Positions 46,343-53,046 of a DNA stretch of 64,000 nucleotides are shown here, in pieces. Position 1 is the first letter of the stretch, and each line of letters begins with the position of its first letter. Origin of the DNA: Tetramitus jugosus (Eukaryota; Protista; Heterolobosea); NCBI GenBank assembly GCA_937625935.1, contig OW569362.1, positions 372,001 to 436,000 on the forward strand. The letters are read 5' to 3'. Below the pieces are notes generated by a model. The model had not been told where the DNA came from. It worked only from the letters and a program-made list of their open reading frames with translations, and ran no database searches. Both the position numbers and the translations under genes were made by a program.

Positions 46343-47302
46343 ATGAATCATGCACAACAGAATAGTTTCAGTCACGGGAATGTAACAGTGACAAGGATGA
46401 TTCTTGATACGAATGCATCACCAAATGTGAACCAAAGGCTCGTCCCCATGTTTTGCTTTCCAGAGTTGGGGACAAATTGCGAACTGTGCTACAAGTCATT
46501 TTTCAGCGATCGGGAAACACAATTTCTGCGCCAAATCTTCGCCATCTACAGTGTGGAAGTTCACGGTTTAAGCTCAACCAGAGACAAACAATCGTACAAC
46601 TATAGCTATGAAAGCCTTGTTGATGATTTGAGTGCGATCGTGCAGGAGCACAAGGACCAATTCTGTGTCGTCAAGAGTCATCTGGAGAAACAACAACCAT
46701 TCTTCCATGGAATGGGAACTGGGTCAGGTGGATACTTGTTGTCTCTGTTTGCTTGTACGCACCCTCATTTGGTTGAGTCCATGGTTCTAATCTCTTCTCC
46801 CATCCATGGTGCCTCATGGCTAGAATCCTTCCAAATGCATGCTCAACAGTGGAGAGCAAATTTGGGTGGTGGAGTTGATGCCTATTCAAAGAAGCTCATG
46901 AGTTTGTACTTTAGTGAAAAGTTTAGACAGCTGCCATCTCACGAGTACATTCTGAACGAGTTCCATGAATATCATGTCTTGTCATTCGAACAGTTAAAGT
47001 ACGATATTCAGTTGAACACGAAAAGAAAGGATTTGAGTGATCAGTTGAAAAAACTGTGTTGTAAAGTTCTTATACTAGTCGGTGAGGAATCTGCATATTC
47101 CAATGACGCTAGCTACAATTTGGACAAGTTTGATCCAGAGTTAGTATCATGGATAAAGGTGCCGAACTGTGGTGGGCTCGTTACGAGAGAAAAACCAGAA
47201 CAGATCATCACATCTCTCAAACTGTTTCTGCAAAGTCAATCTTTCATGTTGGATACAATTGTTGAATCACATTCCAATCCTCTATCGATCACGGTGCTAT
47301 GA
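46343..47302 (+). CDS. NDRG/Ndr-family alpha/beta-hydrolase-like protein
   Basis: ELGTNCELCYKSFF, GMGTGSGGYLL, ASWLE, KVLILVGEES, KVPNCGGLVTREKP. Confidence 0.85.
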   Translation: MNHAQQNSFSHGNVTVTRMILDTNASPNVNQRLVPMFCFPELGTNCELCYKSFFSDRETQFLRQIFAIYSVEVHGLSSTRDKQSYNYSYESLVDDLSAIVQEHKDQFCVVKSHLEKQQPFFHGMGTGSGGYLLSLFACTHPHLVESMVLISSPIHGASWLESFQMHAQQWRANLGGGVDAYSKKLMSLYFSEKFRQLPSHEYILNEFHEYHVLSFEQLKYDIQLNTKRKDLSDQLKKLCCKVLILVGEESAYSNDASYNLDKFDPELVSWIKVPNCGGLVTREKPEQIITSLKLFLQSQSFMLDTIVESHSNPLSITVL

Positions 47303-47629
47303 GCTGAATGATTGTCCCTGTTTCTGTCATAATATGAATTCGATGCCTGTGTCAACTGATGACCAATTGAAGAATTCGATATAAAATCCTTCTTGCCTCA
47401 TCCTTGATAGATACTTTTGTAGCATGGGTACTGTGTGCCACTCAATTTTCATAAACTCTTCGCTCGTGAACCAAGCAATCTGTTCCTTAACAGGAAGATT
47501 GGCCCTGTCATGATCTGAATCCTTCGATTTTACCTTCCTTGTTGAACTCCAAATTTGATATCCAAGAGTGCCATAATGTGCCATAATCTCTTTATAGAAG
47601 AACCCTTTCTTCTTATTCGTGTAATACCA

Positions 47630-47734
47630 TGAACCAATGAACTGATTAAGGTGGCGGTCTACTGTCGATCAAGCCATAATAAAAAAATTATGGTTTCCCG
47701 ATAAGACACCTTAACGCTCCTACATAATCGGGAT
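47630..47734 (-). ncRNA. Putative Fanzor omegaRNA (about 89-nt scaffold plus flank-derived guide)
   Basis: Lies between the Fanzor stop and the element end; stems 47696-47702/47727-47733 and 47674-47680/47687-47693; 8-nt pairing 47707-47714 with 47646-47653; guide end not determinable. Confidence 0.7.
47650..47662. repeat. Terminal inverted repeat (Fanzor 3' end)
   Basis: GGTGGCGGTCTAC, exact reverse complement of 50305-50317. Confidence 0.92.
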
Positions 47735-49663
47735 TTACATAGCAGCTTGATGGAGTGAGCCTTGGAGGTGTTCCACCATTTTGATTAATTCTTTTGCGAC
47801 CTTTTTCTTCCTCTTGAAGGCATCGGGACGTGACTGTCCATCCATTTCTGTTCTCAGTAGATGGAGCATGTTCTTGGCCGCATTGATGTCTCTGTTGTGA
47901 GTCACTAAACATTTAGTGGTTGCACACTGTTTAACTCCTCGGACGACAGAGACATTCAACGTTCCATTCTTGTCTATTCTCTTATGCTTGACTGGCTTCA
48001 TGTGAGAATGGCAATGATGACATTTCTGACTTGTCATGAACTCGTCGATCATTTTCACTTTGAAGTGCTCATTCAACTTTTTCAATAGCTTTCCTTTTGG
48101 TGTTGGAGCATGTCCTTTGTAACAATGGCCAAAACCAGCATTGCCCATCCCAATTAACATGCTTCTTCCATTTGCTCTCTTTCGAAAGTCATTCATAACA
48201 TTGGCAATCGTCTTATCTCTCATTATATAGCTATCCCAATTCAGTCTCTTCACCTTTGGGGTGCAATAAAAATTCAACAAATCATCCTCGACTTTCAATA
48301 CAGAATTGATGTGTTCAAGGAACAGACCACTTGTTGGTACACCGGCCTGTTTGATTGAGTTTTGGAGTTCATCCAAGTTCTTCTCATTCATTTCGTTCCA
48401 TTCTGCTTTGTATTTCAACAATCGCTTGGAGTTTTTTGAATGGTGGGACAGATGTCTATATGTTTTGTTAGAAAACTCCCACTTCTTGCCATCTGAATCT
48501 GCACAACTCACCAACGTAACAATACCCGGGTCAATCCCAACCAAATATTCAGCACCTTCGTTCATATTTGTTTCTTTCTTTCTCTTCTTTGCTTCTTTCT
48601 GGCCCTTGGATTCCTTTGCCTTATTGTTCTTGTGATTGCCAACGAGTTGATGTCTGAGAACAACAGAGGCCTGAATACCGTCAGTTCTGATAGAGTCGAT
48701 TTGAATCTTCTTTGTTCCGATATTCAAACACTTGAGATTGTATTTCAATTCAATGGGTTCAATAACTTGTATATTACCCTTCTTTTGTACTCCTGGTTTC
48801 TTCTTCTGTTGGAGCATGTCTATCAGGTCCGTTGTACCAATCTCCATGCATCTACATTTGAAGTGGGACAAGGGCAACAATGCAAATGATTTCGTATCAT
48901 TGCCAATCAGAAACTGTTGAGCATGCCAGTAAAACTTCAGCATGTTATTGGTGTTGTTGTTCACAAACGATTCATCAATCACTTCGTCGGTTTCAGCACC
49001 AACAAGTGTTCGAACCTCTTGGATCAACACAGGAATAGTCTCTATCAACTCTTTTGGAGGCAGTTTGACAAAATCATAAACTGGAGTGGCGAATGTCAAC
49101 TTTCTGATGATGTATTCTACGACTCTTCTGTATTCAGACCTTGGTATTGATTGACCATTGTGCAATTGATTCATCCTCACTCTCAAATACTTTCTCAGTC
49201 TTTGTTCCAATGTGAACTTGAGCATGTTAGAAATATTGACATTGAGAGACTTTGCAACGTAATTGATGGATTTGGATAACTTCTCACAAATCTTCCTTAG
49301 CTTGATTGTTACGTCATCCATGTTGACTGACCCGTTGATGAGGTTGACATTATCGTCTCTTGTCTTCGATTTGCGTCCAAACAACACTGAACCGATTCGT
49401 TGAATAAATCCTTGATTCAAGAGAGGGATATCACAATTGTTCTCCAAGTGCCTCAAAACAAATATGTTTATAAATCTTGTGAGTCGAAGAGCAATCCTTG
49501 TAATCTCCAGAGCTTGAGTTTGTATGATTGGTAACAGAGTTGGATGATGCAACAATAGAGACTTCAGACCGACCTTGATCACATAATGTGATGAGTATTC
49601 ATCCTTTTTGACAGTCTCTCTCTTTCTCTTTCTCTTGCCGTCCTTAGGCACGCCTCGTGGCAT
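47735..49663 (-). CDS. Fanzor1 (eukaryotic TnpB-like RNA-guided endonuclease)
   Basis: 642 aa; N-terminal NLS (KRKRKR); IRTDG; RuvC-I GIDPG, RuvC-II IDEFMTSQKC, zinc finger CHHC..CATTKC, RuvC-III NRDINAAKNM; D-E-D triad intact. Confidence 0.93.
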   Translation of the reverse strand: MPRGVPKDGKRKRKRETVKKDEYSSHYVIKVGLKSLLLHHPTLLPIIQTQALEITRIALRLTRFINIFVLRHLENNCDIPLLNQGFIQRIGSVLFGRKSKTRDDNVNLINGSVNMDDVTIKLRKICEKLSKSINYVAKSLNVNISNMLKFTLEQRLRKYLRVRMNQLHNGQSIPRSEYRRVVEYIIRKLTFATPVYDFVKLPPKELIETIPVLIQEVRTLVGAETDEVIDESFVNNNTNNMLKFYWHAQQFLIGNDTKSFALLPLSHFKCRCMEIGTTDLIDMLQQKKKPGVQKKGNIQVIEPIELKYNLKCLNIGTKKIQIDSIRTDGIQASVVLRHQLVGNHKNNKAKESKGQKEAKKRKKETNMNEGAEYLVGIDPGIVTLVSCADSDGKKWEFSNKTYRHLSHHSKNSKRLLKYKAEWNEMNEKNLDELQNSIKQAGVPTSGLFLEHINSVLKVEDDLLNFYCTPKVKRLNWDSYIMRDKTIANVMNDFRKRANGRSMLIGMGNAGFGHCYKGHAPTPKGKLLKKLNEHFKVKMIDEFMTSQKCHHCHSHMKPVKHKRIDKNGTLNVSVVRGVKQCATTKCLVTHNRDINAAKNMLHLLRTEMDGQSRPDAFKRKKKVAKELIKMVEHLQGSLHQAAM

Positions 49664-50304
49664 AATGTTATTGTATTTGTTGTGTGTTGTGTTTGTTGTG
49701 TGAGTTGAATCAAACAGCGAAGAAGACAGCGCTTTTTAAACCGAGGAAGATGGCCGTTGCCGTTGTAAAGACAGTCTCAACGGAAATTTTTACAACTGCA
49801 CCAATTCCGCAGCTTAGAGGAAACTGAGATTTAGGCAACAGAAAGATGACGTTACTCGTTTGGCAAATGCTTTATTTCTTCTTGGGTGGTTCAATCTCGC
49901 GTCTTGAAAGAAAATGTCCATCGTCCATCCTCTGAACCAATACACACAACAACCGAAATCATCTACTGGAGGAGACTCCAATATGAAACTCTACCAAGTA
50001 TTGCATCTTTGACTCAGAACTTGTTTAATGACAACGTGTGGATGACTCATCATCCAAGTGTGTTTTTGTATTCTCCAGAGAGCTTCAATGTTCCTGTCCA
50101 CTAGCCCAAATAAAGAAGCCCGAACCTCCGCCGCAGAGAAATCACAAAGCACAAAAGTGTTGCTTGTAACCGAGAATTCACAGTATTGTGGATGATTAAC
50201 ACTTGTGTATGGATTCTGATGTTTTTTGATCGACCCACATCTTGCTTCTTTTTTCTCAAACAAAAATCATTTTATACGAGGAGCCCTATTAATACGAGGA
50301 GTTG

Positions 50305-50317
50305 GTAGACCGCCACC
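50305..50317. repeat. Terminal inverted repeat (Fanzor 5' end)
   Basis: GTAGACCGCCACC; adjacent direct repeats ATACGAGGAG at 50274-50283 and 50292-50301. Confidence 0.92.
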
Positions 50318-51127
50318 TTAAACGCGGAATTCATGAGTGAATTCTCTTCGGTGGCCCAAAAATCATTCGATTCTGACCTATCTGTCTGTATCAAATGCTT
50401 TACTCGCTGGATGGTCTCATCCATGCCGATAGCCATCAATTTCCGCTTGGTAAACCTGGGATCAAACATCTTCATCAATTGTACCACATTGTCCTCATTA
50501 ATCTCGTCCTCCATACTGATCCACTTTTGAATCATTTGCGGTTCAGGTGCATACACGAACAATCCCATTGGACAACACAAGATGTCAAACATGCTTCGAC
50601 CATTCGGATTCGACAAGTATCCACTGTTGTGCACATTATCTTGCACGACTCCAATCATGTCTTCATTTGACACGAGGTTGGGAATATTAATAGGAGAGCC
50701 TCTGTCATCGGCCTCAATCGGGTGCATGTGATAGGTAAACGGATGATCATCATTGAACTCACACAGAGTATATCCACCGTATGCTGTGCCATCTGACACT
50801 GATCTGCCCTTCAATCTTTTCACAGAGAGAAGCGACTCATCGACGTCAGAACTCTCATCTCTGTGCACGTGCAACTCGAAGCAATTCGAAGTTAGAGACC
50901 GCACTTCAAAATGACCACCCGTTTCAATCATCTCATCCAAGGAATCAATGAAAAGAGACCTGAGTTGTGCCACTTGACTCGGTGGAACCACATACTTGTT
51001 GATGAACACAGTCGGTAAAGCATCTGCTGCCCCAAGTTCCGACATTATGATTTTTGATTGGTTATTTGTTGTTCTGGTTAGTTTGTTGTTTATGGAACAT
51101 AATTTATTCGTTGTGTGTTGTCTTGTT

Positions 51128-53046
51128 TTAGAAGAAGCCTGAGAAACCTCCCATACCTCCCATGCCACCCCTACCACCACCACCAAATCTCATACCACCC
51201 ATGCCGCCGCCGCCGCCACCACCCATAAACATACGCATAATATCATTGATGTCACCTCCTTCGAAGCCACCTCCTTGTCCACCCATGTCTTCCAGATCTA
51301 CACCAGAGTCATATCTTCTTCTCTTTTGAGCATCTGTTAAGACATCGTGTGCCTCTCCAATGTCCTTGAACATTTCTTCGGCCTTCTTCTTCTCTTCCTC
51401 GTCCTGGAACTTGTCAGGATGCCACAGCTTGGCAGCCTTCTTGTATGCTTTCTTGACATCTTCAGTGTCAGCATCCTTTGAAATATCTAGAATCTTATAA
51501 TAGTCCTTCCTCTTGGCCTTCTTGTACAATTGTTCAGCTTCCTTCAGCTTTTGCTTCACTTCTCTGTTCTCTGGTTCAATTTCGCTCGCCTTGTGATAAT
51601 CTCTCTTGGCTTCCTCAAACTTTTGAACTTGTTGATAGCATTGTGCTCTTCTTAGGTATGCCTTCAGATATTGAGGGTTCAACTCAATAGCCTTCGATGC
51701 ATCTTCGATAGCGCTATCCCAGTTGTTCAACTTGCCTTGACACGCTGATCTGTTGCAATATAGTTGAGCATTGAGATTCTTGTTCTTTGGATCGTTTTCA
51801 ATAGCGTTCCCATACTTTTCAATGGCTTCTTGATATTTGCCAGACTTGAACAAATCATTGCCCTCTTCCTTGAGTGCCTCTGATCGTCTCAATACCTTTC
51901 TGAATTGCATGGACTTGCTGTGATCAGGGTCCAATTGCAATGCCTGAGTCAAATGTTTCAAGCCATTTTCTGCTTGACCAGAGTAGTACAGTGCCTTTCC
52001 TCGCAAGAAATAGGCCTCAGAGTTATTAGGATCCTCATCACGCAAAATGTAACCAGCTTCCTTGGCGACCAAATCAGACTCTCCTAATCCTAGTTGAGCC
52101 TCCAATTTGTACAACTTGATTCTCGTGCTCATGGACGCCAGATTCAAAGCACGATCAAACTTGTTGAGTGCTTGTTGATACCGCTCAGCATTCAACTCCT
52201 TTTGTCCCTCTTCGACAAACGTCTTGATTTGTTCAATTTTGGTCAACTCTGTCTTCACTGCTGCATTTCCTGGTTCAATTGCAAGTGCACGCTGCAATTG
52301 CATGGCTGCTTCATTCAACAATCCCATGCACGTGTAGGCTGTTCCGGCTCTCAGGTAACCCTTGGAGAATTTTGGATCCAACTCTGTGCACTTTAGTGAA
52401 TCCTTGAGTGCGTCCTTGTAATTTTTCAGTTGCAAATAGCATGCTGCTCTGTTGCTGTAGTAGGCTGCGACAGATGGATCGAGAGCAATGGCCTTGGTGT
52501 ACAATTCGGCTGCAGTTTTCCAATCAGCCTTTGCAAAAAATTTGTTTCCTGCGTCCTTGTACTCGTTTGCCGTTTCAAATGTCGGTATTGGTTCTGCTGG
52601 TTTCTCCTGTTGTTCTGAAGTTGTTGCATGCTGTTGAATGTCTCTTTCTAGTTGTGGAATGTTGGCACCTTGAATCTCGGACACTTTTCTACCATTCTTG
52701 AACAGCAAGAATGTTGGAACAGATGTGATATTGTATTGTTGTGCGAGGTCTTGATTCTTGTCGATATCAACCTTCAAAAAAGTGGCTCTTGAGCTGTACT
52801 TTAGTGCGAGTTTTTGAAGAACGGGAGCTACTTGTTTGCATGGTCCACACCTGTATGTTTTTGTTTTTTTTTTGAGGAAAGAAATTTCATGTATGTGTTG
52901 TGTTAGTTAGTCTCTATGAAAAAAAAGCAAAGATTGATTGTGTTCCAACATCTTACTTACCATTCAGCAAACATGTCAACAACGACGAGCTTACTTCCTC
53001 TAATCTCTTGTTTGAATTGACTTTCGTTGACTTCTCTTACAGACAT
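51128..53046 (-). CDS. DNAJC7: Thioredoxin-TPR-J-domain co-chaperone (DNAJC7-like with N-terminal Trx); exons 53046-52961 and 52850-51128
   Basis: Intron 52851-52960 (GTAAGT..CAG) restores FAEW|CGPC; two TPR clamps; DYYKIL...HPD J domain; G/F-rich tail. Confidence 0.9.

Follow-up and report, generated by a model that had tools for sequence, protein, structure and literature searches.

A 64,000-nucleotide stretch of Tetramitus jugosus DNA (contig OW569362.1, positions 372,001 to 436,000; hereafter the window) carries at 47646-50321 a transposon with an open gene for a Fanzor1, a predicted RNA-guided nuclease. Sequence comparisons point to a non-autonomous TTAA transposon whose Fanzor1 probably homes into vacant insertion sites. 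The element consists of TTAA, a 13-bp terminal inverted repeat (TIR), 2,642 bp, the inverted TIR and a second TTAA. The perfect TIR, GGTGGCGGTCTAC, lies just inside each TTAA, and 2,668 bp separate the two tetranucleotides (47646-47649 and 50318-50321). No transposase was found inside the window element. An earlier note on the same DNA had described the length, the ends and the lack of an intact transposase, and all are present as described. Positions without prefix refer to the window, C-numbers to genome contigs, L-numbers to individual loci and X-numbers to public runs. The genome searched for family copies, TIRs and transposase profiles comprised 26,350,207 bases.

The proposed mechanism starts with a cut-and-paste transposon, which would insert at TTAA by means of a transposase supplied in trans; ends and target are observed. 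A working Fanzor1 would be loaded, by analogy with its homologues, with an omega-RNA made of the right end and TTAA, followed by a guide from the host flank. The ribonucleoprotein would cut the same locus when the element has left it or is missing from the homologous chromosome, at a distance of about 14-21 nt from a preceding W-TTAA target-adjacent motif (TAM; W, A or T). The TAM-distal broken end may then invade the filled copy and re-copy the element from its right end, a homing reaction suggested by junction scars. The element's own C before the TTAA of the filled right junction would fall outside the WTTAA TAM and prevent self-cutting. Repair that was aborted or switched template would explain why some copies are left-truncated, have swapped ends or contain captured pieces of the host.

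Junction scars, vacant alleles and the predicted guide RNA

The scar survey covered seven left-truncated copies whose junction could be read. Three of them begin with TTAA and the start of their own right flank, i.e. the predicted guide target (Table 1). Each scar joins the element via 2-3 nt of microhomology. The anchored exact matches extend over 9, 11 and 9 nt, compared with a maximum of 5 nt in 756 mismatched pairings. On C24, the left flank copy belongs to a host gene, whose end is intact there. The copy on C48 is almost full length with an open reading frame (ORF), and arrival by transposition is unlikely because its left TIR is missing. For GtFz1 and SpuFz1, cuts have been reported 14-21 nt past the TAM. 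Cutting of an empty site in this range, followed by repair of the distal end on the filled template, would give the structure of the scars.

Without homing, the Fanzor would be an active or selected passenger, and the scars would have arisen when breaks made by the transposase were mended by ordinary gap repair or by template switching between the filled and the empty allele. Mosaic ends and cargo do testify to much recombination, and four of the seven truncated copies lack the signature: L006, L010 and L023 show no target duplication, and L036 has TTAA only. However, a break made by the transposase lies at TTAA and cannot have brought 9-20 nt of right-flank sequence to the left of the element. 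Three junctions, independent of one another, lie within this range, and the ORF is under purifying selection. A passenger without homing is unlikely.

A sequence bias next to the target points to the TAM. The base 5′ of the left TTAA is A or T in all nine left ends (p 0.011 against background) and in the three scars. On the right, the corresponding position has C in 13 of 28 cases (Fisher p 0.015 versus left). The filled right junction offers TTAA and a perfect target, preceded by the element's C. This difference between the flanks suggests that the TAM is WTTAA and that the filled junction, with C-TTAA, is spared. The GtFz1 nuclease is a precedent for a TTAA TAM.

With a single TTAA between them, 51045-50322 and 47645-47327 form an open frame of 348 aa, the host gene split by the element. 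Uninterrupted alleles of this gene were present in public contigs of runs X3, X7 and X10. The insertion is polymorphic and recent, because these contigs span the empty site. Run X7 bears the same organism label and has two other insertion sites in common with the assembly. In the empty alleles of X7 and X10 (soil), TCAA replaces TTAA, a silent change. The empty allele of X3 (groundwater) retains TTAA, while the next four bases read TATA instead of TCAG. Both empty alleles differ inside the predicted TAM or seed. In X3, three of the first four target bases are changed versus a background difference of ~1.2-1.6%. Independent substitutions are unlikely at a background of 1.2%; a single multi-base change or a repair footprint would explain the allele.

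Further observations concern the split gene. The empty-allele contig of X7 (window 46510-51077) has 18 differences left of the site and 0 in 757 nt to the right, the asymmetry representing either a conversion tract or a haplotype switch in the assembly. In the ESM Atlas, the clusters nearest to the host gene consist of unnamed Nucleocytoviricota proteins (score 0.94), which is no more than a lead for a viral origin. An intron-like rescue of the gene was considered and rejected: an AG/GT in the left end together with a CAG in the flank could splice 47646-50316 (minus strand) in frame, but no contig shows this joint, and the joints seen are empty alleles.

For the last 115 nt of the window copy, the predicted fold is a short stem with a long hairpin (z -2.2). 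The same right-end fold reaches z -3.0, -3.9 and -4.9 in three relatives and -0.4 in one decayed copy. An internal TTAAGG is kept in 8/8 aligned right ends and pairs with the terminal CCTTAA, including the target site duplication (TSD). The predicted scaffold had no match in Rfam. Published Fanzor1 RNA scaffolds include TIR and TSD (PMC10711439), in agreement with a putative omega-RNA scaffold formed by the right end and TTAA.

Besides the four junctions without duplication, several points weigh against homing by this route. Two scars stop at +9 and +11, short of the published cut sites, which requires resection as an additional assumption. The sample of left flanks is small (n=9), and an asymmetric preference of the transposase would give the same flank bias. 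The TCAA allele is also predicted by strict TTAA targeting, and its chance expectation is ~6%. The basal stem pairs are invariant across the eight ends and lack compensatory changes, which is conservation and not covariation. A transposase with family ends was not identified in the genome.

Fanzor1 protein and element family

The ORF (49663-47735, minus strand) is stop-free, encodes 642 aa and carries the TnpB-type zinc-ribbon domain PF07282. D378, E541 and D592 form the RuvC triad, C548/C551/C580/C585 a C4 zinc finger. Three basic clusters resembling nuclear localization signals lie at aa 10-15, 359-363 and 617-621; triad, finger and localization signal had been read from the letters in the earlier note. 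Fanzor1 proteins are recognized by an E a few residues before the C4 zinc finger in the motif D-X(125,275)-[TS][TS]xx-C4-X(5,50)-RD, an enlarged REC and a size of 550-750 aa. The 642-aa ORF has this size and displays D378, E541, T544-S545, the four cysteines and R591-D592. Among 119 homologues, hardly any variation occurs at D378, E541, R591-D592 and three of the four cysteines.

Sequence search of the PDB yielded SpuFz1 as sole match (E 5e-15). The profile of the 119 sequences ranked SpuFz1, PpFz1 and GtFz1 (E 4e-93, 3e-68 and 7e-63) before Fanzor2 (5e-12) and ISDra2 TnpB (5e-5). Foldseek was applied to a structure model with pLDDT 91, which replaced a shallow-alignment model (pLDDT 54). It gave TM scores of 0.60-0.69 for SpuFz1, PpFz1 and GtFz1 versus 0.23 in the Fanzor2/TnpB comparison. 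The closest solved structure is SpuFz1 (Foldseek E 2.5e-24, TM 0.69, profile E 3.8e-93, 18% identity). Profile ranking and match of the predicted fold identify the protein as a Fanzor1. Its close relatives are few, environmental and 60-76% identical.

Table 1. Features of the window element with its split host gene, and scars at left-truncated copies elsewhere in the genome
Feature	Position	Strand	Remark
TTAA target duplication, 3′ side of Fanzor	47646..47649		predicted final 4 nt of the omega-RNA scaffold
13-bp TIR, right end in Fanzor sense	47650..47662	+	type A
Predicted omega-RNA scaffold	47646..47760	-	short stem and long hairpin closed by UUAAGG:CCUUAA; overlaps final ORF codons
Predicted guide, first ~15-20 nt of host flank	47626..47645	-	same as target at empty allele; placed after known Fanzor1 architecture (PMC10711439, PMC10432273)
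Fanzor1 ORF	47735..49663	-	642 aa; RuvC D378/E541/D592, C4 zinc finger
5′ non-coding core	49664..49827	-	common to close Fanzor copies regardless of cargo
Captured end of pogo-like (DDE_1) TA-flanked TIR element	49930..50185		intact pair at C14:514049-515791 and C28:86541-88272
Short, very deep, apparently polyadenylated left-cargo transcript	49847..50185	-	run X7: deep contig 49876-50185, poly(T) loose end at 49847
Left subterminal TATA-like motif GTATWAATAG	50286..50296	-	common to all three left-end types
13-bp TIR, left end in Fanzor sense	50305..50317	-	
TTAA target duplication, 5′ side	50318..50321		with T at 50322, predicted WTTAA TAM of empty site
Interrupted host gene, 5′ part	50322..51045	-	JAB/MPN-like HxH..SxxD motif at aa 106
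Interrupted host gene, 3′ part	47327..47645	-	
Scar	C24:126319		TTAA and 20 nt of own right flank, 2 mismatches
Scar	C52:269731		TTAA and 11 nt of own right flank
Scar	C48:129356		TTAA and 9 nt of own right flank

Genome matches to the Fanzor ORF comprise 19 full-length stop-free copies and many fragments. Between these copies and the window copy, dN/dS is 0.15-0.33 at dS 0.03-0.73, which indicates purifying selection on the gene and a young age of the nearest copies. A young, non-autonomous Fanzor1 element, as proposed in the earlier note, was borne out by the stop-free copies, the low dS and the lack of an internal transposase. The genome search for the TIR, which that note had recommended for collecting copies and flanks, found 26 exact matches of the 13-mer versus 0 for a control pattern. 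TTAA lies directly outside all 26, without conservation beyond, so the TIR/TTAA structure is not due to chance. Over all loci read, TTAA adjoins 37 of 38 readable ends. The exception is L045 (C24:244738), where a type-B right end is followed by TTGG. The left motif GTATWAATAG had 17 genome matches, all at family loci (control pattern, 1); right ends occurred at ~37 loci, an excess that favours homing, although the left pattern is strict. One of the truncated copies, L006 (C4:597942), is a lone right end joined ~30 nt downstream of a tRNA-Glu gene.

The termini are GG..CC (purine-purine..pyrimidine-pyrimidine, RR..YY) in the end types A, A′ and B. Type B, GGATGTAGTTCG, is a second TIR that also carries the window-type Fanzor. 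It is native to a distant Fanzor family of 37-44% identity (C32:2808-4989; L057), and type-B copies of the window-type Fanzor are therefore chimeras. End types do not track the protein tree. Relatives from other samples, L049 and L050, have kept the right end GGTGGCGG/TTAA. L049:393-2568 is a minimal element without cargo; its left flank reads TCAA and its right flank TTAA, owing to a non-canonical insertion or a later mutation. L047 and L048 (62% identical) lack a TIR, so this Fanzor lineage rides another carrier there, whose end is, at a guess, Helitron-like. Both have a short hairpin-like 3′ end in common, directly after the stop (L047:4521-4560, L048:3862-3900).

A Vps35 fragment, 98% identical to the host locus C22:83229, is present in ~20 copies, and the long insert of the larger copies combines Vps35, F-box-like and chromo-like pieces. 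The window copy differs in its cargo and carries the end of a pogo-like element instead. The intact pair of this DDE_1 element (Table 1) has identical scores, an open 515-aa frame and TA-flanked TIRs; a 380-bp derivative is located at C45:332440-332820. A 90-aa ORF at 50263-49991 was considered as transposase relic and rejected, as it spans the captured pogo-like end. For the left-cargo transcript at 49847-50185, the library type of X7 is not on record, and sister copies may be the source. Next to the split gene, window 51128-52777 (minus strand) encodes a thioredoxin domain in frame with a TPR and DnaJ co-chaperone.

Ends and carrier transposase

TTAA duplications together with RR..YY termini are the signature of Kolobok by the Repbase end criterion, and Kolobok elements have been reported from Naegleria (PMC9587614). 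Among Fanzor carriers, a 2026 review lists piggyBac and does not list Kolobok (PMC13565253). The genome was searched with transposase profiles of seven Pfam families. PF20700 and P2RX7_C had no genome match, and their controls were silent too. Matches to piggyBac (12), MULE (5), DDE_3 (3), DDE_1 (2) and YqaJ (1) all lay outside the family TIRs listed. The earlier note had also called for an autonomous partner and its classification by profile. A partner was not found by TIR, left-end motif, relaxed pattern (contigs C1-C32) or the seven Pfam families, and metagenome and viral contigs with relatives had none next to them either. Where viral contigs matched the TIR, the matches were unpaired and due to chance, and they were rejected as family elements.

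The best guess for the mobiliser is a Kolobok-superfamily transposase, a DDD/E enzyme of the C/DxxH group; this classification by ends is held with a little less than even confidence. Its autonomous copy would then be missing in the primary haplotype, have diverged beyond the reach of Pfam or have died out in the strain. A 4-bp, TTAA-specific duplication, as in Kolobok and piggyBac, is present at 37/38 ends, although a TA duplication within TTAA gives the same sequence. The GG..CC termini recur in the two Fanzor families only 37-44% alike and also in other hosts. Against Kolobok stand PF20700 and P2RX7_C without match, though with silent controls, a single YqaJ match that could not be tied to family ends, and a left-end motif never found outside Fanzor loci. 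That match, C43:251443-252066, is a YqaJ lambda-exonuclease domain in a 466-aa frame and a KolobokE candidate. Of the Kolobok-like ends claimed in the earlier note, TTAA and GG..CC hold, while the Kolobok mobiliser lacks a profile match and a partner between the TIRs. The claimed novelty of a Kolobok-Fanzor pairing agrees with the 2026 carrier list (PMC13565253); transposase-less Fanzor1 elements with TTAA and 13-bp TIRs are already known from insect viruses.

An atypical piggyBac-family transposase accepting GG ends is less probable. Twelve piggyBac domain matches exist in the genome, several open and duplicated. Precise empty sites with a single TTAA and the place of piggyBac among listed Fanzor carriers also fit. 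A TCAA-left/TTAA-right pattern, as in the relative L049, is expected from donor-derived TTAA overhangs of piggyBac. All family ends start with GG, whereas Repbase piggyBac ends are not RR..YY (typically CC..GG). None of the 12 DDE_Tnp_1_7 matches is flanked by family TIRs, and the relaxed pattern on contigs C1-C32 revealed no family-like TIR near any of them. Two pairs of open piggyBac-domain genes with identical scores (C18:38735/C39:393561 and C18:150044/C30:266267) are probably recently active families.

The remaining candidates, together no better placed than piggyBac, are an IS630/Tc1-mariner-like or unclassified enzyme that duplicates TA within TTAA (14-bp TIR starting AGG), or the TTAN element family of insect viruses. 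TA and TTAA duplications are inseparable by sequence alone, and the caveat of the earlier note that a TA duplication would leave the identical empty site stands. Mariner carriers of Fanzor are known, and the insect-virus elements HAmv-1 and SFav-1 have 13-bp TIRs, TTAA/TTAN duplications and no transposase. In a TA reading, T precedes TA at 37/38 ends. The DDE_3 and DDE_1 matches lie outside family TIRs, and the pogo pair has its own TA-flanked ends.

Known systems and the proposed role of Fanzor1

The window element is genuine and young and belongs to a known kind of Fanzor1 element; its pairing with Kolobok is plausible. Spu-1 of Spizellomyces punctatus, which encodes SpuFz1, is similar in its ~19 full-length copies, each a TIR-flanked single ORF without transposase between the inverted repeats, and in additional TAM bases, whose conservation is confined to the left flank (PMC10432273). 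Spu-1 has 30-nt inverted repeats and a CATA TAM, unlike the 13-bp GG TIR and TTAA of the T. jugosus element, which in addition shows host-gene cargo, end swapping and scars. The insect-virus Fanzor1 elements HAmv-1, SFav-1, HVav-1, HAgv-1 and PUgv-1 likewise lack a transposase and have 13-bp TIRs and a 4-bp TTAA/TTAN TSD; their superfamily was left unassigned (PMC3627910). TIR and TSD form part of their RNA scaffold (PMC10711439). In contrast to their TTAN and different hosts, the T. jugosus family keeps strictly to TTAA. Non-autonomous Kolobok elements share TTAA duplications and RR..YY termini (PMC9587614); unlike these, no Kolobok transposase was found here, and the review lists no Fanzor cargo for Kolobok (PMC13565253).

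Restorative homing is known from TnpB of IS200/IS605 and IS607, with a right-end RNA, a flank guide and cutting of vacant sites, features predicted here as well. These bacterial elements have neither TSD nor TIR, and their homing is experimental, whereas that of the amoeba element is inferred. Pack-type DNA transposons (Pack-MULE and similar) are non-autonomous TIR elements with host-gene fragments. The Vps35 piece in ~20 T. jugosus copies resembles their cargo; unlike Pack-type elements, the T. jugosus element also has a selected, predicted RNA-guided nuclease, which may itself trigger capture.

What Fanzors do in nature has been described as unknown (PMC10432273). In the 2026 review, the bacterial TnpB and IscB are the only nucleases listed with cleavage of empty sites and restoration (PMC13565253). 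A Kolobok carrier, if true, would add a superfamily to the Fanzor carrier list. This gain alone is modest because Fanzor1 has changed carriers many times; L047 and L048 already have different, TIR-less ends. For paTetJugo1.1, a heterolobosean amoeba assembly, a second haplotype, GCA_937658345.1, is deposited (PMC11106597). T. jugosus is a harmless, free-living amoeba available in culture. Its two assembled haplotypes and 19 intact copies make the homing hypothesis directly testable in a eukaryote, and readable guides, polymorphic sites and junction scars add to this. The flank bias yields a concrete prediction, the avoidance of self-cutting by an element that makes TSDs. In its widest form, which is possible but doubtful, a Kolobok-mobilised Fanzor1 would be a homing drive of natural origin, guided by RNA, in an amoeba with two haplotypes. 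It would cut vacant WTTAA alleles, spare its own junction by the -5 base, leave scars of aborted homing, drive host-gene capture and face TAM or seed escape alleles in wild populations. The main interest of the family lies in its apparent genomic footprints of homing and in a testable rule of self-protection.

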